DNA of 63,506 bases, filler included, from Syncephalis fuscata S228 (taxonomy: Eukaryota > Fungi > Zoopagomycota): assembly GCA_025786725.1 (NCBI GenBank). It is 4 parts of 4 records of this genome, joined end to end, with 100 filler letters (N's around TTAATTAATTAA, not from the genome) between each part and the next. Parts side by side here need not be neighbours in the genome. Positions count along the whole stretch, not along the records: positions 52,868 to 63,506 come from JAHLTZ010000292.1; 3 more parts are not named here. One strand, given 5' to 3'. A model generated the notes under the pieces. The model had not been told where the DNA came from. It worked only from the letters and a program-made list of their open reading frames with translations, and ran no database searches. A program made the translations under genes and the position numbers. Positions 1 to 63,506 of this stretch are shown in pieces; positions within the stretch are counted from its first letter, which is position 1; each line of letters begins with the position of its first letter.

Positions 1-519
1 TCTATAATAATCAATAAATGTTAGTGTTAGTGTCCGGTATCTAAAATTTAAAACAATATATGTATAAAGTTAGTATGTTGCAATGTTGTGTAGCCGGCCG
101 CTAGCACACTAAAACAATTTGGTGATTTTTATTTATGATATAAATTTGTAATTATCAATACAGGTTAGTAAGTTAGTAATCTAAATCTAAAGTCATCAAT
201 ATAACATTGGTTGTTATATTGCTTGGTAGCCGGCCGCTAACACACTAATCGCCATTGTCCTTGAACTTGATACTTGATGGCTTGTAAATCTAAAGCATTA
301 TATGCAGAGTTAGTGACTGATTTAAGTTAGTTACTTACCATTGCATAATCAGTGCACCATAAAGAAGGACCGGTAAGTGGTTTGTTAAAAGTGAAAAGGG
401 AAAGAGAAGAAGAGCTGCCAATGCAACATCGTGCTAGCAGGTGTTTACAGGTAGTGCATATAATGGCACTGCTGTATGGCCAGTACAGAGTGCCACCATA
501 TGCTACTACCATAGCTAAA

Positions 520-862
520 CACACTATTGCTAGCACGGTGAGCAATGGAAGATATAGAGATAATGATGAGGAGAGGGTGAGGAGAGGGTGAGGAGAGGGT
601 GAGAAAGGAACAGTATATGCTTGGTAGCATATATCCAGCATACACTGTTGCTAGTACGGTAAGTAATGGAAGGTTGGTGAAAAGGATAGGGAAGAAGGAG
701 TGAAGAGAAAGAGATGAGAACAGTGTATGCTTGGTAGCATATAGCCAGCATACACTGTTGCTAGTACGGTAAGTAATGGAAGGTTAGTGAAAAAAGGATG
801 AAGAGAAAGAGGAAAAGAAAGATAAAGAGAAAGATAACCGTATATGTTTGGTAGCATATATT
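520..862 (+). repeat. ~110-120-bp tandem array: hairpin repeat plus purine-rich variable spacer (3 spacers)
   Basis: AACAGTRTATGCTTGGTAGCATATAKCCAGCATACACTGTTGCTAGTACGGTAAGTAATGGAAGG at 609 and 719, separated by GA-rich tracts. Confidence 0.9.
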
Positions 863-3536
863 GCCATAGTTAGCATACTAGCAGCTGCCCACAAGGTAAA
901 ACGATACCGCTAGCACTGCTGTATGGCGCCATACAGCAGGGCGGTATGTAGTACCAAGACTAGGCATGCTTATACTAATAGACTAACAATGACATATAGC
1001 AAGCAAGGCATATACTGAACTTATGGAAACAAGTGCAAGTGGGAACGTGGCTAGTGGATAAATGCTGTCAAGTGTGGTGGATGAGAAAGAGGAACGTGTG
1101 ACGCAAATCGTGTGCTATGCGATCGGCAGTCTGTTTTTATAGTGTGGGTGCAAGTGCTAATGTAATATGAATAAACAATTATTATGATTGGTGCCAATTG
1201 ACTTGTTTGACAGCACTCGCCCAGTCAAACTAAACGTTTATTTTATTGAATAATCATTTTATTAAATTATCAAATCATTAGATTATATTATGATTTGGGG
1301 GTCAAATGACTATATTGATAACATTCGCGTAGTTGAACTGCACATTCAATGTATTGAACATGATGGTGGATGGTAAGTGACGTCAATCATCAAATACTCA
1401 TTGTTGTAAATGTATTGTCCAATATGCATATATCCTCTATTTACTTGCATTATTCACACTGTTTATGCTGTACACTTTTATAATATAATGTCGTTGTACA
1501 TCGTTATACAGTATATTGACCACACTCTATCGATTGGCGTTGTCCATTTGACCATAGCTTTATAGTTGAATTGGACATTCATTACACTCATTTGCTAATT
1601 ACCATATTACGCAGTCACAATTGGACACACTAAAATATTAATAGTAAATTAACGAAAAAATATACAGCAAATCCGATTGGTTCTGCGTACTCAGACGACA
1701 ATTCTGGTTATAATAAGCCAATAAAATGCGATGTGTAAATATTTATTGTTTTTATTCAGAATTGTATATGCATATCATAGCAATATTGGTCAAATATTGG
1801 TAAAAATAATAAGTATACAAATAAATTTGTTTATTTATTGCTATAATTTGTTTATTATGATAGTGTGTTGATTGGTGTATGGTATACTGGCTACTGGGGG
1901 TCAATTCGGCCTATTCTAGTGCAGTCATTGCAGTCATTGCAGTAATTTCAGCTAATGACCAGTCAGTATGGTTCTTGCAGGTCATTACTCGTAGTTCAGC
2001 TACGTATTTTGTTTGTTTTACGTAGTTTTACGTAGTTTACGCATCACTCGCTTCCCCGCGTTGTTTTTACGTATTTATCTATGTAATGGTCACTTTATCG
2101 TTCTATTTACTCATATTGGCCTCAATCTACGTAATTCACACAGCACTCTTCAAGCACCTTCCTAATATGAGCATTAGCGGACGTTTGAATCCAATATAGG
2201 CCGTGGTGACCTTTGTTGTCTCTCTTCTCTTGTTGTTGTGTTGTTGTTGTTCTATTGTCGTTGTTCTTGTTGTTTTTAACTCGCTATCGCTCGTATAGTT
2301 GTTCTGTAACTTCTTGTTCATTTTCCTTCATTTTTCATTTTTGTCTTATTTTTCTTATTTTAGCCCTATTTTATCAAGCCCTATCTTCATTAGCCCTAAA
2401 TATTGTCAAATAATTGTCAAAAATATTTTCAAAAAAATAAAAAAATCGTTGTCTGTTTTATTGTTGTTTCTTCATCTCCTGTTCATTCTGTTTCATTGTC
2501 ACCTACTCTCATATCATTTGAGCTATTATTTATCGAGTTATTCATTGTTATATTTAACTGGGGTGGCCAGAGTTCACTTCAACCAATATAAATCATTGCA
2601 TGTTATAAGTACTATAACATACTGACGTGAATGAGTCGTGTATATTGCTTTCTACAATTAATATAATATACACACGATATCATACAATGATATATGTAAA
2701 TAATGGATGTATGCATATTGAGTATATACACATTGGATATATGCTTACTGGATAATACTTCTACATTGATGTCTATTTTCTATTTTATTTATTCATCATC
2801 CATTATCATGGGCAGTACATTAAATGCTTTTAAAATATTGCCATTTGATCTGCTGATCATACTATAAGCATTGTTAAATTGTTTAATCATTAGTTAGTAT
2901 GTGCAACACATACTAATTGTATAATATTTATTGTCACAATTCACTTGATTAAATACAATAAACTATATTGTATTGATTTTTTGATTGAGATGCAAAAGTA
3001 TAAAGCTTTGCATCTACTTATTTAGTAGCTATGTGCTTTTATTTAATGCTTTGCTTGGATATTGTTTGGTAATATCAATTACTAATCACTTGGATATTAC
3101 CAATAAATAATATATTATTAATTGATCCAATATTTTTTTTAATCTTGCTGTTAATTGATAGCAATAGTATCAATTAATCTTGATGATGTCACATCAAGTA
3201 CTTGTGAAGTTGCTATTGTTGCTATTGTTGCTATTGTTGTGATGGTATACCGCCGTTTATTGGTGACAGTATACCACCACATACAAATTATGATGGATAC
3301 TGCTACAACTGCTATATCACATTACTTACTTATTTAAAATCGCGATTAGTGTGTTAGCGGCCGGCTACCTACAATTCTAAAACAATAAATACAATGTTAA
3401 TACGTTAGTAGACAATTGTCTTGAATTGATATTGCATATTTGGTTTTAGTGTGCTAGCGGCCGGCTATGTATAATAATAATACATACGCTAGGTGTCCAT
3501 GGCCGGCTACCTACGGATCTAAAATAATAAATACAA

Positions 3537-4512
3537 TGTTAGTGTTAGTGTTGATGCCAATGTTGATGTTGTTACTAATGTTGGTGCCGGTGCCGGTGCC
3601 GGTGCCGATGTTGATATTGGTACTGGTGCTGGTGCTGATGTCGGTGTTGGTACTGGTGCTGGTGTCGATGTTGGTGCTGGTGCTGATGCTGGTGCTGGTG
3701 CCGGTGCCGGTGCTGGTGCTGATGCCGGTGTTGGTGCTGATGTTGGTGCTGATGCTGGTGTTGGTGCTGATGCCGGTGCTGGTACTGGTGCTGGTACTGG
3801 TGCTGGTACTGGTGTTGGTACTGGTGCTGGTGCTGGTGTTGGTGCTGGTGCTGATGCTGGTGTTGGTGTTGGTGTTGATGCCGATGCTGGTGCTGGTGCT
3901 GATGTCGGTGTTGGTACTGGTGCTGATGCCGGTGTTGGTGCTGGTACTGGTGCTGGTACTGGTGTTGGTACTGGTGCTGGTGCTGGTGTTGGTGCTGGTG
4001 CTGATGCTGGTGTTGGTGTTGGTGTTGATGCCGATGCTGGTGCTGGTGCTGATGTCGGTGTTGGTACTGGTGCTGGTGCTAGTGTTGGTGCTGGTGCTGA
4101 TGCTGGTGTTGATGCCGGTGTTGGTGTTGGTGCTGGTGCTGATGTCGGTGTTGGTGCTGGTGCTGGTGCTGGTGTTGATGTTGGTGCTGATGCCGGTGTT
4201 GGTGCTGGTACTGGTGCTGGTACTGGTGCTGGTACTGGTGCTGGTGCTGGTGTTGGTGCTGGTGCTGATGCTGGTGTTGGTGTTGGTGTTGATGCCGATG
4301 CTGATGCTGGTGCTGATGTCGGTGTTGGTGCTGGTGCTGGTGTTGATGTTGGTGCTGGTGCTGCTGCTGATGCCGATGCTGGTGTTGATTTTGGTGCTGG
4401 TGCTGCTGCTGATGCTGGTGTTGGTGCTGGTGCTGATGTCGGTGTTGGTGCTGGTGCTGATGCTGGTACTGGTGTTGGTGCTGATGCCAGTGCTGGTACT
4501 AGTGTTGGTGTC
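3537..4512 (+). repeat. GGTGCT/GGTGTT/GATGCT hexamer minisatellite
   Basis: About 1 kb of degenerate 6-mers with a 150-bp higher-order duplication (3841 vs 3991). It explains the spurious poly-VL ORF 3467..4549. Confidence 0.95.
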
Positions 4513-5040
4513 CGGCTATCTAAAATCTATAATAAGCAATAAATGTTAGTGTTAGTATCCGGCATCTAAAATCTAAAATAATACATATAAAGTTAGTATG
4601 TTACAATGTTGTGTAGCCGGCCGCTAGCACACTAAAACAATTTGGTGCTTTTTATTTATGATATAAAGCTGTAATTATCAATACAGGTTAGTAAGTTAGT
4701 GAACTAAATCTAAAGTCATCAATATAACATTAATTGTTATATTGTTTGGTAGCCGGCCGCTAACACACTAATCGCCATTGTTCTTGAACTTGATACTTGA
4801 TGGCTTGTAAATCTAAAGTATTATATGAGAGTTAGTGACTGATTTAAGCTAGTTACTTACCATTGCACAATCAGTGCACCATAAAGAAGGACCGGTAAGT
4901 GGTTTGTTAAAGGAAAAAGGGAAAGGGAAAGAGATGTGCTGCCAATGCAACATCGTGCTAGCAGGTGTTTACAGGCAGTGCATATAATGGCACTGCTGTA
5001 TGGCCAGTACAGAGTGCCACATATGCTACTACCATAGCTA

Positions 5041-5475
5041 AACACACTATTGCTAGCACGATGAGCAATGGAAGGTATAGAGGAAAGATGAGGAGAGGAT
5101 GAGAAAGGAACAGTATATGCTTGGTAGCATATATCCAGCATACACTGTTGCTAGTACGGTAAGTAATGGAAGGTTGGTGAAAAGGATAGGGAAGAAGGAG
5201 TAAAGTGAAAGAGGATGAGAACAGTGTATGCTTGGTAGCATATAGCCAGCATACACTGTTGCTAGTACGATAAGTAATAGAAGGTTTAGTGAAAAGGATG
5301 GAAAGAAGGGGAAAGAAAGAGAATGATAACAGTGTATGTTGGTAGCATATATCCAGCATACACTGTTGCTAGTACGGTAAGTAATGGAAGGTTAGTGAAA
5401 AAAGGATGAAGAGAAAGAGGATGAGAAAGAGGATGAGAAAGAGAAAGATAACGGTATATGTTTGGTAGCATATAT
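5041..5475 (+). repeat. Hairpin repeat/purine spacer array, second copy (4 spacers)
   Basis: Same repeat at 5109, 5220 and 5328. Confidence 0.9.
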
Positions 5476-6029
5476 TGCCATAGTTAGCATACTAGCAGCT
5501 GCCCACAAGGTAAAACGATACCGCTAGCACTGCTGTATGGCGCCATACAGCAGGGCGGTATGTAGTACCGAGACTAGGCATGCTTATACTAATAGACTAA
5601 CAATGACATATAGCAAGCAAAGCATATACCGGACTTATGGAAACAAGTGCAAGTGGAAAGGTGGCTAGTGGATAAATGCTGTCAAGTGTGGTGGATGAGA
5701 AAGAGGAACGTGTGACGCAAATCGTGTGCTATGCGATCGGCAGTCTGTTTTTATAGTGTGGGTGCAAGTGCTGATGTAATATGAATAAACAATTATTATG
5801 ATTGGTACCAATTGACTTGTTTGACAGCACTCGCCCAGTCAAACTAAACGTTTATTTTATTGAATAATCATTTTATTAAATTATCAAATCATTAGATTAT
5901 ATTATGATTTGGGGGTCAAATGACTATATTGATAACATTCGCGCAATTGAACTGCACATTCAATCTATTGAACATGGGGACAAGTGGTGAGTTTGATTTA
6001 ATCGTCACATCATCACACTTATTGCTTTT

Positions 6030-6820
6030 TGGGGACAAATGACTATTTTAATAACGCCCAATCTATTGAACATGATGATGAGTGGTGAGTGACATCAGTC
6101 ATCAAAATACTCATCAGCATAGATTCGTTATCCAGTATGCATATATTAGTAAATATATATATTTATTTACCTATATCATTCCTGTACTATCCCACACCAT
6201 TGTATCCCATTCTACGATAGACTAGACACACTTTATTGTTTATATACACCAACAAACTCCATTCAGTCTACTCATTGCGCTATATGCGCTATAGTTTTAA
6301 CTTTATTTTATATGCTTTTTCACCGTACATTTATTATTCTATATATCATTCTATAATCGCTTAGCCTTCCTCTATCCAAATCTGTTTATACTTTTGTTCT
6401 AGCTTTATTATTAATAAATGTCGACTAATGTCGATCATCTGCTCATGCATATATGCTCAATAACATTAACATTGCTAATCGTTACTGCGTATTGCATATT
6501 CTTTATATTATATGCCGTTTTATTGTCTAATGACTACTGGCTATTTATTGCGGCTGTTCTTTTTGTTTTAGCTCTATTATTAACAAAGTTGACTAATTTT
6601 GCTCAGTTTGCTTAATAGACTATATATTTATTTATTTAAAACTCATAACAAATAGAATGTATTCAATATGCCATATAATGGTAATGATATAGGTGAATGG
6701 AGAGTATATGTGTACTGGATAACGAATCGATGCTGATAAGTATTTGATAACTAATGTCACTCACCACCCATCATCATGTTCAGTAGACTGGATGTTATTA
6801 AATGTTAGCCATTTGACTAC
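6030..6820. mobile_element. MITE-like foldback block with ~150-bp imperfect terminal inverted repeats
   Basis: 6040-6180 (ATCTATTGAACATGATGATGAGTGGTGAGTGACATC...) is the reverse complement of 6683-6815. There is no coding capacity and no TSD could be identified. Confidence 0.55.
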
Positions 6821-11422: not shown

Positions 11423-12203
11423 ATGGAAGACGCAGCAAAGAAACGCAAAGAGCGATTGCAAGCATTACGCGCTGCAAAGGAGGCGGTTGACGCAGGCGAA
11501 CGTCCTACTGCAAAGTAAGATGCTTATAATCTTTTGATTCATCGTGTATTCTATTGTTTATTTATGTTTTACTAGACCATCGCTGCGCTTCCGTAACTAT
11601 ACGCCGTTAAATGAGGATATTGCCACTATTGCCACTGCTACTGGTGCAGATAGTGCCGATTCCGACGTAATAATGGAATCAGGTCAAACACTACGCAATC
11701 CAGTCGATGATAATAATAGTAAATTCATGGATACAGAAGAAAGTGAGGCGCTAAAACCACGAAAACGCGGCCCATCCGATCTTGATGCAACAGTAGAAAA
11801 GGCCATGGCAGGCATTACTGATAAGACCATTGCCGAGGAGGCTGAGCGTAATAAAGAAGATATGGTGGGTTGCGTAAATACATACACACGATAAATAATG
11901 ACATTTAACCGATGTATGTTTATTATTATAGGATCTATTTCATTTAGCACCAAAGAAAGCCAATTGGGACTTGAAGCGAGATGTAGAGAAAAAGCTAAGT
12001 AAATTAGAACGACGAACACAAGCTTCTATTATCGAATTGATTCGTGAGTATATACGTGTATATCAACACAATTAACCAACACTCAAATAGGCCAACGACT
12101 TCAAGGGGGCAGTGATAATGACAAAGCGGCCAATCTAGCCGATGCAGTAGCCGCACAACAACGCCAGGACGATGCATCTTTGTCGGGATCAGAAGAAGAA
12201 TAG
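11423..12203 (+). CDS. cwf18: Pre-mRNA splicing factor Cwf18/CCDC12 family (4 exons)
   Basis: MEDAAKKRKERLQALR...LRFRNYTP...DLFHLAPKKANWDLKRDVEKKLSKLERRTQASIIELIRQRL across GT-AG introns; TAG at 12201. Confidence 0.9.
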
Positions 12204-12935: not shown

Positions 12936-13035
12936 NNNNNNNNNNNNNNNNNNNNNNNNNNNNNNNNNNNNNNNNNNNNTTAATTAATTAANNNNNNNNN
13001 NNNNNNNNNNNNNNNNNNNNNNNNNNNNNNNNNNN
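12936..13035. other. Artificial contig linker N44-TTAATTAATTAA-N44
   Basis: Exactly 100 bp with stops in all six frames; identical at three places. Confidence 0.98.
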
Positions 13036-13998
13036 CATACGTAGGCCACCATCATCTGGTCGGCTCTGCTTAATAGGTTTGCCATCAACATCGGTCAAAC
13101 AAACGGCACCACCATAGTGCGAAAAGTGGTCATGGCCGCCTAGAACCAAATCGACCTCTTTATCGAGCTCACGGGCGCAGACTTGGTCATTAGGTAGACG
13201 CATATGTGTCAATGCAATGACAATATCGCATTGACCACCCTCGGCTGACCTTAGATGATTGGCAAGTTTTTTGCCAATTTCTACGTAGTCACGATACTCG
13301 ACCGTTGGTGGTAAGCTAATGCATTAATAAGCTAATGGTTAAAAAAATAAACAGCAACACAGCGACTTACTCTGAAATGGTCTGTAGCCATTCTCTAATG
13401 CACATTAATTATTATTAGCTGTGTTGTTATAAATGCTATATTAATATATTGAATCTTACTTTTCAACCAAACCAATAACACCGATCTTTATGCCAGCACG
13501 CTCTACAATAATATACTCTTTTCCATTGGCTAGAGGCATATTGGTGCTTGAGTCAAAGACGTTGGAAAGCACCATGGAAAATTGCACAAAGCAGCCAGCT
13601 TTTCCAAATTGGCTACACCAAAATCAAAATCCTATTTATAATATGTAAGTAAAATATTCAATACTGAATATTAGTTAACAGCTTACATGGTTTCCGTAGC
13701 AAGCAACATCGATATTTAGTTTATTAACTACTGGCACCATATGTTTGCCTTTTGTAACGGAAGACTCGATACTGGGATTGAAAAGATCGCCGCTGAATAG
13801 AATCAGTGCATTATCCAACGGAGCCTGGCCATCCACTTGCTCAGTAAATGTACGGGCTTGTTGTAAAGCGGTGTAGAAACGAGCCGCGCCACCGACCGGC
13901 TCCTTTGCTTGTTCATCCAAATGATAAACATCGTTGAAATGAACAATACGCAACACCGTCTCTCCGTGCTCGTTGGTCCAGCTGTTATCGGCGGTCAT
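13036..13998 (-). CDS. 5'-nucleotidase / calcineurin-like metallophosphoesterase, 3'-truncated
   Basis: Motifs HFNDVYH, GGAARF, FSGDLFNPS, GNH|DFDFG, LSNV, ALTHMRLPND and LVLGGHDH; spliced. Confidence 0.9.
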
Positions 13999-15347
13999 AG
14001 TGGCTATGTGAAGGGTGCTAATTCTTTACAGGTGAATAGGATGAATGAGTGTGCGTATACGTACACGTATACACGTAGAGGATAGGTATGCACGCGCATG
14101 CCTACAAAGGAATGTGGCTGTTCTTGGAAATCCAAACTAGTTTCGATAGCACCATTGTACTACTTAGTCTTATGGGTCCAGTGTTAGTTTGTTTGCTATT
14201 TTTATATTTACATATATATTAATGCATCACTGTTCAAACACAGCTTAGTTGATCCAACTCATTAATTGCAGTCTTTTGTTTTAAAACTGGTGTTGAGCAG
14301 CATATTTTATTAAATACAAATGTTGTAAAACACGAAATAAAATACAGCTGCTAATTATAAGCAGGTTGCGGAATTACTCATTAATTGTAGATAATGCTAT
14401 TTAAATTACACTTACCACATTTGGTAATTATAAATTATCTAAATCTTCCCACAGTTAGAATTGTAATATATGCATTTTTTACCATATTCCAGACCTTATT
14501 TTCTACATAAATAGAGAATAGCTATTTAATTAGCTACTTTTTATTCGCAATAACGTACAGATAAGTTGTTTTAATTTATATCTCTACGTATGTATATATT
14601 TATAACTGTTATCGTGTTTTCACAGCAATTTTATAATTTACTACAAATATATTGTATATTATATGAAAGCAATATTAAAAATATATTAATTAGCAATATT
14701 GTTACTGTTCCACAATTACGGTATATTCATAATTACATCAAATATGTCACATGATTAACTATTCTACCATATGAATTAGCGATTATATGACACGGCCGAG
14801 ACATATGGTCCCATGATATTATTTACATACATGCAAATAGCCACAAGTATACAATAACACAAACAATATTTTATATCTACAATAATACAAGTAATATTTA
14901 AGCTATCTTGTTAGTCGGCTTACGTGATTGGCTATACAAACTAATAAGTATCACATGAAGAAAGAAGAACAAGCAAGATGTTTAATTTTATCATTAAATA
15001 TTATTTAATGTCGACGCGATATTTTTTATATAATTACGCATATATTTTTATTATCAAAATAAGCCACTATCATTTATTCTAATCTCAATTTTTAGTTTAT
15101 ATTCAAAAATTTGTCCCAATTTATTTTATTGTCTAAACGGTGTCAATACGCTGAATGACCACTAATTAGCTGCTCTAACATTTTACATATTTTGTTTGAC
15201 TAAGGTAAGCTTCTTATTGGCCACGTATTCAAGTACTTATTTATAGTGAACCATTATCTCATAACTAATTTTTATTTCAGGTATAAAGTTAAGATTAGAT
15301 ATTGCATAGCCGACTAATTGCTGTGTCTAATTTGCATAACAATAGCA

Positions 15348-17305
15348 TTGTTAATAAACATATGTCAACAACTAATAACTGTTGTTAGTTGTTTATCGAT
15401 AATAGTTAGTGTTGATATTATATATATGTACTATCCTTGTGATTTAGTAGATTTTTCTAATTGCCTAATGTATTTTTAGGCACACTGTTATAACAATACT
15501 GACATAATATCGGAATGCTAGCAATACTATGGTCGTGAAAAAATAACATTTTTATTTCTAATAGTTATAATTGTAGTAAACATATCTTGAAAAGCCGATA
15601 AAGCGCTAGTTTACAGATTTAAACCTTCAATTATCATTTCAATTCTATGCCAGTATGCAACCGTATTAAAAGAGCTATTGTAGTGTAATTAGATGATAAA
15701 AGGCAATGGAATGCGAATTAAAGGCAATATTAATCATTTAATTAATAAAATGTTGTCAGTATGATGTATACCTTTACGTAAAATCAAGCAAATTGCCTAA
15801 TATTTTGCACAGTTATGCATTTGATATATAAATAACTATTGGCAAAGTATACCGTTATTGCATTGTGTGATGATGTAGTAATTGTAGTAATACACTAATA
15901 AATGTACAAAAATAGCAGTTTTTAGTCATTCATGGCATATATACTTGAAATACAGTAAAACGATTATTGGATTCGGGTTCTGCATGCTTAGTTATACCGA
16001 TTGGTATGATTTATAGAACAACGATTTTTGCAAAAAAAGTTGGTCAAAAATGCAATTTACGTGTTTTTGATTTACTTAGTAAAGCGTTGATATTACTACG
16101 TATACCTTTACGTAAAATCAAGCAAATTGTCTAATATTTTGCGCAGTTATGCATTTGATATATAAATAACTATAGGCAAAGTATACCGTTATTGCATTGT
16201 GTGATGATGTAGTAATTGTAGTAATACACTAATAAATGTACAAAAATAGCAGTTTTTAGTCATTCATGGCATATATACTTGAAATACAGTAAAACGATTA
16301 TTGGATTCGGGTTCTGCATGCTTAGTTATACCGATTGGTATGATTTATAGAACAACGATTTTTGCAAAAATAATTAGCTAAAAGTGGAATTTACCTGTAA
16401 ATACTATTAATGAAAACGGTTAAACTTTATAATTTTAATATAAAAAATAAAATTTGGTATAAAGTAAATTTAAAGTACTTTACAGCACAAAAACAAAACA
16501 TAATAGCAATTTAGTATACAAAAACATTAATACACAGTGGTAATTTATGCTATTGGTATATATATAGCAGATTTTCATTAAAATATTTACAGATAAATTC
16601 CACTTTTGACTAACATTTTGTGCAAAAATCATTGTTCCATTTCTTATACCAATCGGTATAACTAAGCATGCAGAACCCGAATCCAATAATCGTTTTACTG
16701 TATTTCAAGTATATATGCCATGAATGACTAAAAACTGCTATTTTTGTACATTTATTAGTGTATTACTACAATTACTACATCATCACACAATGCAATAACG
16801 GTATACTTTGCCAATAGTTATTTATATATCAAATGCATAACTGTGCAAAATATTAGGCAATTTGCTTGATTTTACGTAAAGGTATACATCATACTGACAA
16901 CATTTTATTAATTAAATGATTAATATTGCCTTTAATTCGCATTCCATTGCCTTTTATCATCTAATTACACTACAATAGCTCTTTTAATACGGTTGCATAC
17001 TGGCATAGAATTGAAATGATAATTGAAGGTTTAAATCTGTAAACTAGCGCTTTATCGGCTTTTCAAGATATGTTTACTACAATTATAACTATTAGAAATA
17101 AAAATGTTATTTTTTCACGACCATAGTATTGTTAGCATTCCGATATTATGTCAGTATTGTTATAACAGTGTGCCTAAAAATACATTAGGCAATTAGAAAA
17201 ATCTACTAAATCACAAGGATAGTACATATATATAATATCAACACTAACTATTATCGATAAACAACTAACAACAGTTATTAGTTGTTGACATGTGTTTATT
17301 AACAA
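15348..17305. repeat. ~2-kb foldback (inverted arms ~700 bp) with an internal ~270-bp direct duplication
   Basis: 15348-~16040 is the near-perfect reverse complement of ~16610-17305. 15766-16035 is repeated at 16100-16370. Confidence 0.95.
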
Positions 17306-52867: not shown

Positions 52868-55340
52868 GATAATGGATGATGAATAAATAAAATAGAAAAT
52901 AGACATTAATGTATTATTATTATCCAGTAAGCATATATCCAGTGTGCATATACTCAATATGCATACATCCATTATTTACATATATCATTGTATGATATCG
53001 TGTGTATATTATATTAATTGTAGGAAGCAATATACACGACTCATTCACGTCAGTATGTTATAGTGCTTACAACATGCAATGATTTATATTAATTATTAAC
53101 TCACATATATGATGTATTGCATCGGTAGATTGACACTCACATATTGAAGAATAGAATTTAGCACTCATTACCATAAGAGTTATGTACGTTTACATGCACA
53201 GATGTAACATTAACTAAACAATAACATTGAATTAAATATATTGTTATAGGACATATATTGACAGACATATACTAATTGAATAATGGAACAAATAAATATG
53301 GAATTAATTGAATAAATGAGTGATTGACTAATTGACGGACAAATTGAATAACTAAATAAGCAACTAATTGCCCAACTGAACAACTAAATGATCAACCAAT
53401 TGAATAAAGACTAACTAATTGACCAACTAATTGACCAACTATTGACTAACTAGTTGGCATAATTTCCCAACTAATTGACTAACAATATTACAGACTAACG
53501 AGCAGACTAATTCGTAGACATTAATAATCAACAATATAAGAAGTAGACAAACAATGGCATAAATGATTGAACAATAGACTAAATAACAGAATGGTTGACA
53601 GATTGACAGACTGGTCAACTAACGGATTGAGGGTTGAAGTGAACTTTAAGCCACCACATATTGACTTTAACAATGAATAACTCGATAAATAATAGCTCAA
53701 ATGACATGAGAGTGGTTGAAATGAACTTTAAGCCACCACATATTGACTTTAACAATGAATAACTCGATAAATAATAGCTCAAATGACATGAGAGTAGGTG
53801 ACAATGAAACAGAATAAACAGGAGATGAAGAAACAACAATAAAACAGACAACGATTTTTTTTTATTTTTTGAAAATATTTTTGACAATTATTTGACAAAG
53901 ATTTAGGGCTAATGAAGATAGGGCTTGACAAAATAGGGCTAAAATAAGAAAAATAAGACAAAAATGAAGAATGAAGGAAAATGAACAAGAAGCTAAGAAC
54001 AACTATACGAGCGATAGCGAGTAGAAAACAACAAGAACAACGACAATAGAACAACAATAACAACAACAACAAGAGAAGAGAGACAACAAAAGGGTTCTAC
54101 CACTACGGGACCTAGTATTGGAGTTCGAAAAACGGTCACGCTAATGGCTTCATATTAGGAAGGTGCCACTCAAGCAGTAGTGCTGTGGCAATGTGCTGTG
54201 CAGATTGAGGCCAATATGAGTAAAATACAACGAGTAAAGTGACCATTACATAGATAAATACTTAAAAACAACGCTGGGGAAGCAAGTGATGCGTAAACTA
54301 CGTAAAACTACGTAAAATAAACAAAATACGGTAGCTGAACTACGAGTAATGACCTGCAAGAACCATACTGACTGGTCATTAGCTGAAATTACTGCAATGA
54401 CTGCAATGACTGCACTAGAATAGGCCGAATTGACCCCCAGTAGCCAGTATACCATACACCAATCAACACACTATCATAATAAACAAATTATAGCAATAAA
54501 TAAACAAATTTATTTGTATACTTATTATTTTTACCAATATTTGACCAATATTGCTATGATATGCATATACAATTCTGAATAAAAACAATAAATATTTAGA
54601 CATTTTATTTTATTGGCTTATTATAACCAGAATTGTCGTCTGAGTACGCAGAACCAATCGGATTTGCTGTATATTTTTTCGTTAATTTACTATTAATTTT
54701 TTAGTGTGTCCAGTTGTGACTGCGTAATATGGTAATTAGCGAACTGAGTGTAAGGAATGGCCAGTTTCAACTATAAAGCTAGCGTAAAATGGACTGCGCC
54801 AATCGATAGAGCGTGGCCATTATACTGTATAACAATATACAACAACACGCTATAAAATAAAACACATATGGTATACAACGTCAAATTTACAGTGATAAGT
54901 TACAGTGTACCACTATGGCCATTTCAAGTGCCCTCACAAAAGGGTTTAACATTAAGGTACGTTTTTGTTATAAAAAGCCCTAAAACATAAACACGCGCTT
55001 ATTTAATAATAGATCTAGAAGCAAAACAGCAATGGTGTTGCATAGCTCTTACGCATTATACAATAAATGGCATACAATATAATGAATGTACAGCGTAATA
55101 AGTGGATTAAGTGAGGTGTGTTGCCGCATATAATAAACAAAATGTGTCTAGTGTATCATATGATGCTATATAGTAGTGTTTCAATAGAATTATAGTGATA
55201 TATGTAAATAAAATATAGATGTGTACTGGATAATAAATCCACGATAATAAGTATTTTGACAGCTGGTACCACTCACCACCAGTTCTATATCCAATAGAAC
55301 GAATGGCAGGTTTTAATGGGACAAATATTATTAAATTAGT
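52868..55340 (-). repeat. Composite repeat modules, reverse complement of ~1300-2810
   Basis: 52868-53090 matches rc 2590-2810, 53750-54850 matches rc ~1490-2550, and 52868-53240 is directly repeated at 62427-62800. Confidence 0.9.
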
Positions 55341-55934
55341 CATTTTATTATAAATCGGATTGTAATTAAATGGCTTGATGATTGATGTTATTCATCACCT
55401 AGCATTATATTCAATGAAATAAGTATTATTAAATGTAATGATTTGATTACCAAATTATTAACAGCTTATTAAATATTAACGTAACACAATATAAATGACG
55501 TTTAAATAAAATACTAGTACTATTGTTAAATGAGTGGTGGTGTTGAAATATGTTATTATTATTTTAGCAAAATAACATGCGCATACACCTTCATTTTGTT
55601 ACAGTAACATTGTAACAAAGTGGCCATTTCCGTGGCCACTAAATTACTAGTCAGTCACACATGGCAAATACTATTTTTATTTATTTTTTATTTTTTATTT
55701 TTATTTTTATTTTTATTTTTATTTTTATTATTTTATTTTCTTGTATATTGTTCTACTCTAATACTAGCTATCAACTAGAGCAATATATAAACACACCAGT
55801 TATCACAAATAAAAACATGATCAATTTTTATACAAATTTACGTTTATTTCTCTCTAACTTGTGCTTTGTCACTTGTCCAAGTAATCTGCATACTCAGTGT
55901 ATCTCATCAGGTTACATTAAGCAAAAAATACCAA

Positions 55935-58830
55935 ATGTTCTCTCTCATTACTACGTATTTTGCCAAGCGTGCTCGCGTTGAGCAACCAGCTTCTAGTGTA
56001 GCTGAGCAATCTACTTCTAGTGTAGCTAATCAGCCTAATACTACTTCTTTATTCAAGCGTGCTCGTGTCAAACAATTGAATAGTAGTCCCGTGCCTATAA
56101 CCTCTGATGATTCAACATGTAAGTATCATTTTAATCTGTATATTGTACAATTTGTAGCAACGACTCTAACTTCAGCTTCACTATAGGCAGTATGAATATC
56201 AGCGTGTTTGAGGGATACACTCAAGAGCATGATCATAAGCAAAGCGATGCCCCTTATCATCTTAGAAATATTAATTATGTCCGTACACATATTCAAGGAG
56301 TGTCTGGTGATTTAAAAGACAAATATTGTGTTAAAAACTTTTCTGATGAATCCCCCAAAACTAAAATACGTCGAGACATTGATTCAATTGCGATAGTTTG
56401 CGATGAAATTAAAACAATACCTGTCACATCTTGTGACATCGATATAATGGTCAGGGCCAATTACAATTTCTCTTACAAGTCTGATACCGGCGTTGTTTAT
56501 AATCACCATACATTAACAAAAGGTGAAGACGTTAAAATATTCCATATACCAAATTTAAATTTTGCTAAATTCGGTAAATTACAGGTAATGTATACAAAAA
56601 TACGTTTTATTTAAGCTAATCATTGGTGCTTTTACTATTGTTTAATTATAGGTTGTAATATGTTTTCCCGCCTTGTATTATAAGCGATCCTTGAATCAAA
56701 CAAAGCATACATATGCTGTTGATCAAGCTACTCATAAGCTTTTTGTGGATTCGGTACTTATACCTGCCCTTAATAATTTATCTGACAGTGAAGTTTTGTC
56801 TGTTCCTTTATCATACGATTCTACTCAAGTAAACACTAGCGTTAGTTTATATTCCGATACAGTAGACGAACTTCTTACGCAAATGCGTAGAATAATATTA
56901 AATAATCCTGATACCAAGGACTTTGATTCATTTTTTTTCATCGTTTGGGGACTAGGATTTAAAAAAAGGTACCCTGATGAAGGTATTATTTCACTGCATT
57001 CGCCTAGAAAAATATTAGAAACTTTCAACTTAAATTGGGACATTATCCCTTTAGATAAAACATATATTGATGTTGGATTTTCTATTTTACCTATCGAATG
57101 TAATTATCCGTTAACTGGTTTTGTTAAAGACCATGATGACATTGCTTTTCATTTTTTTAGTGATGATCCCATCCGTTTGGCTAGTGGTAAGCTAGAATAT
57201 ATATATATATGCGTTTTGCCAAATCATATTTTATTGTTTACTGACTTTTTCACCTATATTCATAGCAACTCGTCGTTATGATAGTTTTTGCAACTTTGAA
57301 AATTTTGGTGGTTTTAAACACACCAACACTGTTCGCTCGAGGCTGATAAATATGCAAGTCTACAGCCTGAGCAAACACGCCTTCTATACACGAGCTTCAG
57401 GCAATTCTGATCGTCATGGACGTGATTTCAGCCCAAATGAAGTACTTGAAAAAGGCAGAGGTGCCATTAAGTTTATAGTAAGTGCTTGCAAAATTATGGT
57501 TAATTATTGATTTGTAATTAATTTCTTTTTAGAAATTAATCGAAAAAAATATCGAATTGATGAAAAAGAAGAATTATGGTGTTCGTTTTGAATTTCGGTT
57601 AATTATGCCGAGTTTAATACCGACATTCAAAACATAGAAGACAAATTTGGGTAATATATAAATTTAAATTACTATACTTGCTAACATTTTTATTTATAGA
57701 CTTGAAGTGTACGAAAAAGTTGTTTGGAATTATTCTGATCAGCTTTGGTCCTATGCTGGCAATAGAATTAACGCTTTGTGGTATCTGGTAGAGACAAATT
57801 ATCTTTCGGTCAGCAACAGATACTCAGATCAACACCTGTCTTTTATTGCCCAGCTTAGCTATATGTTATCGGCAGTATTCCACCGCCCGATGGACAGATC
57901 TCAGTGGCGCGACACTGTCGGCCAAACGTTAAAAAACCATCGCCGTCTAGATTCTAGTGCTTGTTTTCTTCCTAACCTTATCGAGTCTAATTCAGATGAT
58001 AATCGTTGGTCAACAAGTGACATTTATACTGTTGATAAACTGAAAGCCATTTTTGAATTTAGCCAATTCGAAACTGACAGGATTACTGTAACTTTAACTA
58101 ATACCTCTGATACTGATACTTTTACTGATGTAGCCGAATCATTGCCTATCATTAATAGTCTGCCGAGTGGCCCAGTTTATAAATTCAACTTAGAAGTGGA
58201 TGATGCCAATATCACAAGCATATTAAGACTGAACACTATCATTTTGATAAAGCCTGTCAATATTTCTGTACTCATCGTCTTGGACCAGGAAATGTGGCGC
58301 CTTTTGTTGACCTTTATATGGATGAAGTGTTTACTATGTACAAGTGGATGAATTTGTAAAGGAGGAACATAAAGAAGGCTTTAATAGATTTGGACGACGA
58401 ATATTCTCCAACGAAGCGGATTTTCACCTTAAGCTGATTGTAAATATTTAAGCTGTTTTGTTTAATACTTCATTGAACATAATTAACTTTGCTATTTATT
58501 CATTTAGAAAAAAAGCGTTCAATTAACAACATCTAACTATTACGAGACCTGGACAGAGAAATGGTATTTTCCCTCCCATGCTGTTATTGAAGAAGATCCC
58601 ATTGACACGAGCCATCCACATAAAAGCGGGAGATGGAGCAAGCACGGTGCAAGAACAGCATACATAATACTCGCACGCCAGAATGATGTTAAAGAGGAGT
58701 TTATAAACTTTCGTTTGGCGTGTCTTGAATATCTTAGAAGCCACTATCCTATTATCCTAAATGTGCTAAGAGCAAATTATACGTCGTGGCACAACGAAAA
58801 ATGCAGTTTGTTCAAACAGCCAATAATTAA
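55935..58830 (+). CDS. Unknown multi-exon protein embedded in the repeat unit (candidate element-encoded protein; frameshifts in 3' half)
   Basis: Exons 55935-56118, 56187-56584, 56652-57186, 57266-57477, 57533-57650 and 57700-... join through phase-compatible GT-AG introns. Apparent frameshifts at ~57600 and ~58220. The 3' end is uncertain. Confidence 0.75.
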
Positions 58831-58889
58831 AAATATTTTTGAATAAACTTATTTTATAATAAAGTTTATTACATTTATAGCAATTTATT

Positions 58890-59960
58890 AATAATTCAAT
58901 ATGATTTGGGGGTCAAATGACTAATTTAATAACATTCGCGCAATTGAACTGCACATTCACTCTATTGAACATGGGGACAAGTGGTGAGTTTTATTTAATC
59001 ATCACATCATCACACTTATTGCTTTTTTGGGGACAAATGACTAATATTTAATAACGCCCAATCTATTGAACATGATGATGGGTGGTGAGTGACATCAGTC
59101 ATCAAATACTCATCATTGTAGATTTATTGTCCAATATGCATATATCTACTATCTACCTATATCATTACCATTATATGACATATTGAATACATTCTGTTTG
59201 CTATGAGTTTTAAATAAATAAATATATAGTCTATTAAGCAAGCTAAGCAAAATTAGTCAACTTTGTTAATAATAGAGCTAAAACAAAAAGAACAGCTGCA
59301 ATAGATAGCCACTAGTCATTAGACAATAAAACAGCATATAATATAAATAATATGCAATACGCAGTAACGATTAGCAATGTTAATGTTATTGAGCATATAT
59401 GCATGAGCAGATGACCGACATTAGTCGATATTTATTAATAATAAAGCTAGAACAAAAGTATAAACAGATTTGGATAGAGGAAGGCTAAGCGATTATAGAA
59501 TGATATATAGAATAATAAATGTACGGCGAAAAAGCATATAAAATAAAGTTAAAGCTATAGTGCATATAGCGCAATGAGTAGACTGAATGGAGTTTGTTGG
59601 TGTATATAAACAATAAAGTGCGTTTAGTCTATCGTAGAATGGGATACAATGGCGTGGGGTAGTACAGGAATGATATAGGTAAATAATATATATATGTGTA
59701 CTGAATATATGCATACTGGATAACGAATCTATGCTGATGAGTATTTTGATGACTGATGTCACTCACCACCCATCATCATGTTCAATAGATTGGGCGTTAT
59801 TAAATATTAGTCATTTGTCCCCAAAAAAGCAATAAGTGTGATGATGTGACGATTAAATAAAACTCACCACTTGTCCCCATGTTCAATAGAGTGAATGTGC
59901 AGTGCAATTGCGCGAATGTTATCAATATAGTCATTTGACACCCAAATCATAATATAATTT
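58890..59960. mobile_element. Foldback block with ~250-bp near-identical inverted arms
   Basis: 58900-59145 (ATGATTTGGGGGTCAAATGAC...) is the reverse complement of 59705-59950. Confidence 0.75.
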
Positions 59961-62900
59961 AATGATTTGATAATTTAATGAAAATGATTATTCAATAAAA
60001 TAAACGTTTAGTTTGACTGGGCGAGTGCTGGCAAACAAGTCAATTGGTACCAATCATAATAATTGTTTATTCATATTACATCAGCACTTGCACCCACACT
60101 ATAAAAACAGACTGCCGATCGCATAGCACACGATTTGCGTCACACGTTCCTCTTTCTCATCCACCACACTTGACAGCATTTATCCACTAGCCACCTTTCC
60201 ACTTGCACTTGTTTCCATAAGTTCAGTATATGCTTTGCTTGCTATATGTCATTGTTAGTCTATTAGTATGAGCATGCCTAGTCTTGGTACTACATACCGC
60301 CCTGCTGTATGGCGCCATACAGCAGTGCTAGCGGTATCGTTTTACCTTGTGGGCAGCTGCTAGTATGCTAACTGTGGCAATATATGCTACCAAACATATA
60401 CGGTTATCTTTCTCTTTCTATTCCTCTTTCTCTTTCTTTTCATTCTTTTTTCACTAACCTTCCATTATTTATCGTACTAGCAACAGTGTATGCTGGATAT
60501 ATGCTACCAAGCATATACTGTTCCTTTCTCACCCTCTCCTCGCCCTCTCCTCATCATTACCTCTATACCTTCCATTGCTCACCGTGCTAGCAATAGTGTG
60601 TTTAGCTATGGTAGTAGCATATGGTGGCACTCTGTACTGGCCATACAGCAGTGCCATTATATGCACTGCCTGTAAACACCTGCTAGCACGATGTTGCATT
60701 GGCAGCTCTTCTTCTCTTTCCCTTTTCAATTTAACAAACCACTTACCGGTCCTTCTTTATGGTGCACTGATTATGCAATGGTAAGTAACTAACTTAAATC
60801 AGTCACTAACTCTACATATAATGCTTTAGATTTACAAGCCATCAAGTATCAAGTTCAAGGACAATGGCGATTAGTGTGTTAGCGGCCGGCTACCAAACAA
60901 TATAACAATTAATGCTATATTGATGACTTTAGATTTAGATTACTAACTTACTAATCTGTATTAATAATTACAAATTTATATCATAAATAAAAATCACCAA
61001 ATTGTTTTAGTGTGCTAGCGGCCGGCTACACAACATTGCAACATACTAACTTTATACATATATTGTTTTAAATTTTAGATACCGAACACTAACACTAACA
61101 TTTATTGATTATTATAGATTTTAGATAGCTGGACACCAGTACCAACACCAACATCAACACCAGCACCAATACCGGCACCAACATCGGCACCAGTACCAGC
61201 ACCGGCATCAGCACCAACACCAACACCAGTACCAACATCAACATCAACACCAGCACCAATACCGGCATCAACACCAACACCAGTACCTGCACCAGCATCA
61301 ACACCAACACCAATACCGGCATCAACACCAACACCAACACCAGCACCAGCATCAGCACCAACACCAACACCGGCACCAACATCGGCACCAGCACCAGCAC
61401 CAGTACCAGTGCCAACACCAACACCAGTACCGGCATCAACACCAACACCAGTACCTGCACCAGCATCAACACCAACACCAGTACCTGCATCAGCATCAAC
61501 ACCAACATCAACACCAGCACCAATACCGGCACCAACATCGGCACCAGCACCACTACCTGCACCGGCATCAACACCAACACCAGTACCTGCACCAGCATCA
61601 ACACCAACACCAACACCACCACCAGTACCTGCACCAACATCGGCATCGGCACCGGCACCAACAATAGTAACAACATCAACATTGGCATTAACACTAAACA
61701 CTAACATTGTATTTATTATTTTAGATTTGTAGGTGGCCGGCCATGGACACCTAGCGTAAGTATTATTATTATACATAGCCGGCCGCTAGCACACTAAAAC
61801 CAAATATGCAATATCAATTCAAGACAATTGTCTACTAACGTACTAACATTGTATTTATTATTTTAGCATTGTAGGTAGCCGGCCGCTAACACACTAATCG
61901 CGATTTTAAATAAGTAAGTAATGTGATACAGCAGTTGTAGCAGTATCCATCATAATTTGTATGTGGTGGTATACCGCCACCAATAAACGGTGGTATACCA
62001 TCACAACAATAGCAACAATAGCAACTTCACAAGTACTTGATGTGACATCATCAAGACTAATTGATACTATTGCTATCAATTAACAGCAAGATTAAAAAAA
62101 ATATTGGATCAATTAATAATATATTATTTATTGGTAATATCCAAGTGATTGTTTATTAATATTACCAAACAATATCCGAGCAAAGCATTAAATAAAAGCA
62201 CATAGCTACTAAATAAGTAGATGCAAAGGTTTATACTTTTTGCATCTCAATCAAAAAATCAATACAATATAGTTTATTGTATCTAATCAAGTGAATTGTG
62301 ACAATAAAGATTATACAATTAGTATGTGTTGCACATACTAACTAATGATTAAACAATTTAACAATGCTTATAGTATGATCAGCGGATCAAATGGCAATAA
62401 TTAAAAGCATTTAATGTACTGAACATGATAATGGATGATGAATAAATAAAATATAAAATAGACATTAATGTATTATTATTATCCAGTAAGCATATATCCA
62501 GTGTGCATATACTTAATATGCATACATCCATTATTTACATATATCATTGTATGATATGGTGTGTATATCATATTAATTGTAGAAAGCAATATACACGACT
62601 CATTCACGTCAGTATGTTATAGTGCTTATAACATGCAATGATTTATAATAATTATTACCTCACATATATGATGTATTGCATCGGTAGATTGACACTCACA
62701 TATTGAAGAATAGAATTTAGCACTCATTACCATAAGAGTTATGTACGTTTATATACACAGATGTAGCATTAACTAAACAATAACATTGAATTAAATATAT
62801 TGGGAGCATAGGTAGCCTGTCCCCACCAATTTTAAAATTTTTATTTTACCACCATTTCCCACCAAAGTATATCTATGTTTATATACATAGATACAGCATC

Positions 62901-63497
62901 AACTAAGCAATGTTTTGCAAGTTATTTGAATGTACTAGCTTGTATATTGACGGACTTTTACTGGTAGGCCAATTTACTCAATATTTGAGTAAAAATGGCA
63001 ATAAATAGCCGATAATTGTCCAATAGACTAACTAAATGAATAATGGACTAAACAACCGAATAATTGACCAAGTTACTTAACAATAGCGTATTTGCATAAT
63101 GTAATAAGTAGTTTAAGCAATAAAAGGTTGAAGTGAACTTTAAGCCACCACATATTGACTTTAACAATGAATAACTCGATAAATAATAGCTCAAATGACA
63201 TGAGAGTAGGTGACAATGAAACAGAATAAACAGGAGATGAAGAAACAACAATAAAACAGACAACGATTTTTTTTATTTTTTTGAAAATATTTTTGACAAT
63301 TATTTGACAAATATTTAGGGCTAATTGAGATAGGGCTTGTTAAAATAGGGCTAAAATAAGAAAAATAAGACAAAAATGAAAAATGAAGGAAAATGAACAA
63401 GAAATTACAGAACAACTATACGAGCGATAGCGAGTTAGAAAAAACAAGAATAACGACAATAGAACAACAACAACAAGAGAAGAGAGAGACAAAAAAA
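59860..63497 (-). repeat. Composite repeat copy in reverse orientation (array, palindrome, minisatellite, AT-rich blocks)
   Basis: 59860-61117 matches rc 1-1360/4526-5975, 61130-61700 is the CCA-strand minisatellite, 61700-62650 matches rc 2590-3540, and 63160-63497 matches rc 2210-2550. Confidence 0.93.
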
Positions 63498-63506
63498 GGG
63501 TTAGGG
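63498..63506 (+). repeat. Possible start of a (TTAGGG)n telomere tract
   Basis: The sequence ends in GGGTTAGGG exactly where homology to the internal copies stops. Only 1.5 repeats are visible. Confidence 0.45.

Follow-up and report, generated by a model that had tools for sequence, protein, structure and literature searches.

The gene-bearing subtelomeric units known so far encode helicases or reverse transcriptases, and rolling-circle transposons of the Replitron, Helitron, and Helentron types form head-to-tail arrays. The Y' element of Saccharomyces cerevisiae occurs in 0 to 4 tandem copies, with forms of 6.7 and 5.2 kb and ~2% divergence (PMC11042809), and in TLH subtelomeres a conserved gene family lies just inside the telomeres amid tandem repeats and transposons (PMC12857005). 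Pyricularia has subtelomeric tandem repeats bounded by interstitial telomere words (PMC8381367), and short telomere words likewise mark the boundaries of tandem units in MoTeR, FoTeR, and the 4-kb Pyricularia repeat (PMC8381367, PMC12857005). Replitrons and Helitrons have short direct-repeat ends, a subterminal hairpin, and non-autonomous partners (PMC10288648). The telomere repeat of Mucor is TTAGGG (PMC11258239). In the literature that we searched, we found no report of a Syncephalis telomere repeat and no description of Zoopagomycota chromosome ends.

Syncephalis fuscata is a zoopagalean fungus with a mycoparasitic habit. The window, i.e., the whole stretch of S. fuscata S228 DNA (63,506 nt, filler included), ends in a piece from record JAHLTZ010000292.1 (52868 to 63506), which the analysis covered and in which an earlier note had described modules recurring with a period of ~9.4 to 9.6 kb and one spliced gene between them. 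The period holds, with the two copies of module A (376 nt, 52868 to 53243 versus 62427 to 62802) 97% identical at an offset of 9559 and the two copies of module B (53714 to 54096 versus 63126 to 63502) 93% identical, with gaps, at an offset of ~9410. A second assembled copy (L001), which is distinct from the window copy in both sequence and structure, makes up the last 18 kb of the 669-kb S. fuscata contig JAHLTZ010000013.1. It begins with a foldback arm, D1, the minisatellite segment, D2, A, spacer 1, spacer 2, and B, continues with four head-to-tail 850-bp copies of module C, the upstream region, the gene, and the foldback, and then repeats D1, the minisatellite segment, D2, A, and the spacers up to the contig end. 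Because this independent copy shows the identical order, the fixed-order tandem unit is confirmed, and in both assembled copies the gene lies inside it. The features of the unit in the window are as follows.

52868-53243, unstranded: module A, first copy, incomplete at the piece edge; 97% to 62427-62802 and 95 to 98% to the two L001 copies
53244-53631, unstranded: spacer 1, degenerate 12-bp tandem repeats; present in both L001 units
53632-54096, plus strand: 82-bp tandem duplication and module B, ending in AAAAGGGTT at 54088-54096
54097-54946, plus strand: module C, ~850 bp, ending in a small hairpin and AAAAGGGTT (54938-54946); one copy here, four head-to-tail in L001
54947-55934, plus strand: gene upstream region, with a diverged (65 to 77%) foldback-family arm at 55089-55434; 1 substitution in 969 nt relative to L001
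58844-60010, unstranded: foldback/MITE-like segment with inverted arms (core 58900-59106 / 59745-59951, 97%)
60011-60860, plus strand: module D1, ~110-bp subrepeats, with a perfect 12-bp-stem hairpin of ATGGC..GCCAT core at 60302-60325
60863-61905, unstranded: minisatellite-bearing segment flanked by inverted repeats of 32 bp and 25 bp
61906-62426, unstranded: module D2; 87% with gaps to two L001 copies
62427-62802, unstranded: module A, second copy; 97% to the first copy
62803-63125, unstranded: spacer 2; 86 to 88% to both L001 units
63126-63502, plus strand: module B, second copy, ending in AAAAGGGTT
63497-63506, plus strand: terminal telomere-phase 10-mer AGGGTTAGGG, G-strand toward the piece end; other copies continue into module C

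The unit period is 13.6 kb in L001 versus 9.4 to 9.6 kb in the window, where the unit has one module C instead of four, shorter minisatellites, and one spacer per copy. The two window spacers between modules A and B are non-homologous, and each window copy lacks one of them, since the L001 unit carries both in series. The unit is a composite of separately abundant repeat families, including the foldback arms, found in four diverged copies, and the minisatellite segment, and this composite makeup is equally well explained by a passive segmental repeat. No target-site duplication was seen at the foldback/MITE-like segment. The minisatellite itself (61134 to 61660) has a 6-bp period and a variable length; across 61095 to 61776 there are open frames on both strands, encoding 107 to 224 aa of simple repeats, which are probably not genes because none is present in the protein collection. 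A circular contig overlap was rejected, as the two ends of the piece are 3 to 7% different and have different spacers, and an rDNA spacer, a tRNA, or a structured RNA was likewise rejected.

The gene at 55935 to 58830 is spliced, as the earlier note had claimed. It runs from an ATG at 55935 to a TAA at 58828 to 58830 in seven exons, and every intron is GT-AG.

55935-56118, plus strand: exon 1, with the ATG and two KRAR basic motifs and without a signal-peptide-like stretch; intron 1 joint seen in run X5
56187-56584, plus strand: exon 2, DIDS motif
56652-57186, plus strand: exon 3, GxK and YxD motifs; 100% to P0001 (KAI9595941.1)
57266-57477, plus strand: exon 4, RxD..GGF and QxYxxxK motifs
57533-57650, plus strand: exon 5, RxEFR motif; the window copy lacks one base near 57608
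57700-58439, plus strand: exon 6, HRP motif; single bases missing near 58204 and 58346 in the window copy
58508-58830, plus strand: exon 7, GAR motif and stop (58828-58830); base missing near 58756 in the window copy

Run X5, which is probably an RNA run, joins the exons precisely across introns 1, 5, and 6; the gene is therefore transcribed and spliced. Its L001 copy is intact, with phases that join without a stop over 837 codons. The four bases that the window copy lacks relative to L001 are probably consensus errors, because read contigs have matching numbers of gaps (1 plus 2 in the RNA-like run and 4 in run X2, as counts without gap positions). Five of the six coding substitutions between the two copies are synonymous. 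The upstream region and gene are 0.1 to 0.3% apart between copies and the flanking modules 1 to 4.4%, a pattern to be expected if sequence is exchanged with units that lack the gene and are more numerous. Reads, which were compared with window positions 52868 to 58867 (6,000 letters), agree with L001 at five variant sites and carry variants of neither assembled copy at 56850, 58091, 58104, and 58284, so that at least three gene haplotypes are present. For comparison with Y', which occurs at several chromosome ends, the observations here are two assembled copies and at least three haplotypes. Contig depth was 7 to 12 on most of the gene and mostly 90 to 970 on the modules; depth here is not copy number, and the much deeper modules are compatible with gene-less units, the kind that the earlier note had described at 1 to 5975 (period of 4525 bp).

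In run X10, from another sample with the same species label, nothing of the gene was detected at 85% identity, and diverged modules were present. Most differences of the X10 module copies over 52868 to 55667 are G>A (97) or C>T (39), a strong transition bias that suggests deamination of methylated repeats. Run X5 contains a relative of module C (window positions 54151 to 54847) that is ~12% diverged and has a depth of ~244, possibly an abundant non-coding transcript.

The window gene was searched exon by exon, and stored database proteins served as multi-exon queries. A profile search with exon 3 alone gave a 100% match to P0001 (KAI9595941.1), a partial hypothetical protein of S. fuscata and the one annotated protein of this gene model in the databases. 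It belongs to a family with fourteen representatives at an E value of 0.001 and 22 to 33% identity, whose alignment spans the whole length, from the exon 2 DIDS motif to the exon 7 GAR motif, with the conserved motif order DxDS, GxK, aromatic-x-D, RxD..GGF, QxYxxxK, RxExR, HR, and GAR. These eight motifs, made up of acidic and basic residues, occur in the same sequence throughout; seven loci have a nearly complete set and one more has part of it. The family proteins, of 840 to 1,100 aa, are encoded by intron-containing genes, and the family is undescribed, old, and patchily distributed in fungi. Named members come from Rhizopus delemar and an Albugo candida assembly; the rest are spliced genes on metagenome contigs, which we take to be fungal. 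The member in the A. candida assembly (L002, on a 7.3-kb contig) has 69% DNA identity to metagenome locus L024 and reflects either fungal contamination of the oomycete assembly or transfer. A 1.3-kb contig of a human-skin metagenome assembly (L013), which matches exon 4, was left out of all comparisons.

Single exons, stored proteins, and alignment members gave no credible match in Pfam, PHROGs, or NCBIfam; word-seeded homologue searches with exon 2 and P0001 returned nothing beyond self; a PDB sequence search gave no match and structure-atlas feature searches no usable match; and no relative was found among viral contigs and plasmids. Two AlphaFold2 models were poor (pLDDT of 43 and 52), and fold searches with these low-confidence models were all at background; weak matches to TBP-like and helix-grip folds (Z of 3 to 4) are a lead only. 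The earlier note had recognized no RT, DDE transposase, or helicase motif, and Pfam and motif searches agree with it, as there was no RVT match, no conserved YxDD, and no Walker A or DExH. An HxH pattern of the HUH type is not conserved across members and has no Pfam match. A Rep_trans initiator was considered for its loosely similar motif order and rejected, with an hhalign probability of 0.4% against pT181 RepC (single sequence); among the fold matches of the low-confidence model there was no Rep chain. A secreted or membrane protein was rejected as well: the N terminus is of low complexity, with basic motifs and without a signal-like stretch, there is no clear signal-like or membrane-spanning stretch, and the top 19-residue hydropathy is 1.1 in P0001 and at most 1.75 in its relatives. 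Judged from its motifs only, the protein has about an even chance of being a nuclear, metal-dependent enzyme that acts on DNA.

Modules B and C both terminate in AAAAGGGTT, which is followed by module C, by the gene block, or, at the window end, by AGGG. In L001, AAAAGGGTT occurs five times, at junctions only, versus 0.19 expected, but four of these occurrences repeat a single end; one AGGGTT word is found at every junction, in two independent contexts. The end of the final copy that the earlier note had described is confirmed: the piece terminates in AGGGTTAGGG, the sole perfect telomere-phase word of at least 8 nt in the piece, and L001 has none. A 10-mer like this arose anywhere in 9 of 500 resamples. 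Module B normally ends in GGGTT, so that only the last four bases of the 10-mer are new, and these free bases, AGGG, have a composition probability of 0.0014 and sit exactly at the junction nucleotide in the right polarity. Telomere evidence in the window is confined to these 10 terminal bases; on thin evidence, the window end fits telomere addition at a one-unit seed. Internal telomere tracts were found neither in the window nor in L001, the L001 contig end has no TTAGGG, and none of the read loose ends listed (those outside 54020 to 54081, by the module B end) carried telomere repeats.

Among the relatives, there is one clear case only of a family member within a few kilobases of a telomere tract. 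Locus L015, at one end of a 3.55-Mb contig, carries the gene for P0014, with its stop near 12180, and a perfect (TTAGGG)n tract extends from 16549 to the contig end. The subtelomeric reading is supported by this locus, since P0014 ends ~4.4 kb from the tract and is transcribed toward it, in the same polarity as the window gene. Its surroundings include Ty3 and Harbinger-like elements. On the other side, contig breaks occur in any long tandem array. Given the 10 terminal bases, a second copy that sits at a contig end but lacks TTAGGG, and a single homologue next to a genuine telomere in a different fungus, we consider a subtelomeric position of the repeat likely. The earlier note's interpretation is partly supported: the tandem unit has a fixed order, and the gene lies inside it and exists in several haplotypes. 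That the unit is autonomous, with a 4.5-kb non-autonomous partner, is hypothetical.

Like Y', the Syncephalis repeat is a gene-bearing tandem unit with size classes and a few percent divergence between copies, and, to judge from the terminal 10-mer, it may likewise lie beside telomere repeats. Unlike Y', it has no helicase motifs (no Y'-Help), has six introns, lacks telomere tracts between units beyond one 6-nt word, and shows much larger internal copy-number variation, in module C and the minisatellites. As in TLH subtelomeres, a member of a conserved gene family is found just inside a telomere, at L015, but the protein lacks a RecQ domain, Walker A, DExH, and any helicase match in Pfam, and its sequence is unrelated. 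In operation the unit would resemble Y' and TLH, but it belongs to neither family, because the helicase test failed. A tandem arrangement with telomere words as boundaries, which the single AGGGTT word at each junction may represent here, is also that of MoTeR, FoTeR, and the 4-kb Pyricularia repeat; in contrast to MoTeR, FoTeR, and SART, the unit has no reverse transcriptase, and the six introns kept in the DNA argue against an mRNA intermediate. Short direct-repeat ends and a hairpin, as seen in module C and, for the hairpin, downstream of some family genes, may be features in common with Replitrons, Helitrons, and Helentrons, as may non-autonomous partners and head-to-tail arrays, but the family has neither a conserved HUH motif nor a Rep/helicase domain, no canonical TC...CTAG ends of a Helitron were recognized, and no insertion events were observed. 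A MoTeR-type or HUH element is ruled out by the missing reverse transcriptase and HUH Rep signature. A DDE TIR transposon was also rejected, with no DDE Pfam match, arms around the gene that are only 65 to 77% alike, and no duplication seen.

The reading that we favor, about as probable as all else combined, is a Y'- and TLH-like subtelomeric tandem macro-repeat in which a new gene resides and which spreads when chromosome ends recombine. The unit would comprise one to four copies of C, the upstream region, the gene, the foldback, D1, the minisatellite segment, D2, A, the spacers, and B (9.4 to 13.6 kb), and, as with Y' and TLH, ectopic recombination or break-induced replication may copy units from one chromosome end to another and reshuffle them. 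Abundant modules would be traded with a more numerous set of diverged copies that probably lack the gene, and the rarer gene block would stay nearly identical. AGGGTT, a one-unit telomere word at module ends, may serve both as a junction and as a seed for telomere addition, which would give the window its end, and the gene would be a resident of the subtelomeric compartment. This reading is supported by L001, which fills the last 18 kb of its contig with the identical module order, by the near-identity of the upstream region and gene between copies, the mostly synonymous coding substitutions, the haplotypes, the deeper modules, the position and polarity of the P0014 gene, and the restriction of AAAAGGGTT to junctions, and it has a documented parallel in the Pyricularia repeats. 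Repeat and gene together may represent a new kind of chromosome-end or mobile element. A protein that mobilizes the unit would amount to a new type of transposase; otherwise it would still define a new telomere-linked gene family, conserved over long distances and with a testable role in end maintenance.

Such mobilization is the substance of a reading that we regard as possible but doubtful, in which the unit is an autonomous mobile element of an undescribed class and the protein is its own strand-nicking and transfer enzyme, working by a copy-and-paste, rolling-circle-like route. The downstream hairpin and short direct-repeat ends, the head-to-tail arrays, telomere-word targets, and gene-less partners like module C would all belong to it. 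L006 and L024 carry members of different clades with no coding DNA match and nevertheless share their 5' (85%) and 3' (80 to 99%) flanks, and the homologue at L004 is enclosed by direct repeats of ~300 bp that are 5.67 kb apart, the contig ending in one of them. A hairpin with an ATGGC..GCCAT core is found 0.5 to 1.5 kb 3' of the gene in three independent settings of about seven (window/L001, L004, and L006/L024), once per L001 unit, in both L004 repeats, and in L006 and L024, versus 0.00 to 0.13 expected per locus for a motif picked after the fact. Copies of module C are joined exactly head to tail, with a 9-bp direct repeat and a hairpin at their bounds, run X10 has modules and no detectable gene, and the eight motifs keep their order across loci. 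That homologous loci have termini and a downstream hairpin in common is more easily reconciled with an element that has ends of its own than with a passive passenger. However, no transposase, HUH, RT, or Rep_trans match was obtained, the low-confidence folds matched nothing above background, the hairpin is missing in L002, L005, L015, and L018, neither an empty site nor a target duplication was seen, and the L015 copy has no flanking unit repeat. The remaining family members are on contigs of less than 8 kb. We propose only tentatively an undescribed telomere-associated DNA mobile element of early-diverging fungi, with a new mobilizing enzyme that would act at a downstream hairpin and at telomere-word junctions and so build tandem arrays of units with and without the gene. 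Recombination between ends and spread by an enzyme of the unit's own can coexist.

Two further readings seem improbable to us. The repeat could be an interstitial macrosatellite or MITE-like nest with a captured host gene, its terminal AGGG arising by chance or as a consensus artefact of a low-coverage contig end; a unit composed of separately abundant families, an imperfect window consensus with four probable indel errors, and the lack of internal telomere tracts in the window and L001 would suit this account, but AGGG is an improbable ending, at the exact junction nucleotide and in the right polarity, and the independent homologue at L015 adjoins a telomere. It is similarly hard to credit a single gene locus at one repeat-rich chromosome end, with the window and L001 as alleles (a haplotig) of an ordinary fast-evolving host gene. 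The gene block is indeed 99.7 to 99.9% identical between the two copies, the runs give long gene contigs whose depth is even and low, and the databases hold one annotated protein of the model. Against a single locus stand the four read variants that belong to neither copy, the structurally different flanks (one C versus four, and spacer deletions), and runs that assemble ~5 Mb in tiny records and yet contain 1- to 2-kb gene contigs at a depth of ~10, which suggests more than a single copy.

Several observations concern the surroundings of the relatives. Degenerate CCCTAA-like clusters downstream of three homologues were rejected, being of opposite polarity and only partly significant. Segments that look tRNA-like by eye lie downstream of the gene, on the opposite strand, in L004 (~6270 to 6340) and L018 (~3840 to 3910), with no ARAGORN or Rfam call. 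An intronless 556-aa ORF at L015 (247 to 1917, plus strand), in a subtelomeric region of a probably fungal contig, has motifs recalling pT181-type Rep_trans initiators (DISID, IKIYNK, and TRIE) and no Pfam, PDB, or phage match; a Rep_trans reading of the family was unsupported against this ORF as well. Ty3/Gypsy LTR retrotransposons with identical or near-identical LTRs directly adjoin family members in two different fungi (L004, 6426 to 12433, and L015, 2690 to 9100). Also in L015, a Harbinger-like element with a DDE_Tnp_4 and chromodomain gene (13351 to 14847, minus strand) lies between 254-bp direct repeats at 13031 to 15309, 1.2 kb from the telomere, and from 15300 to 16549, ~1.2 kb of strand-biased, decayed telomere-like sequence leads into the perfect tract.
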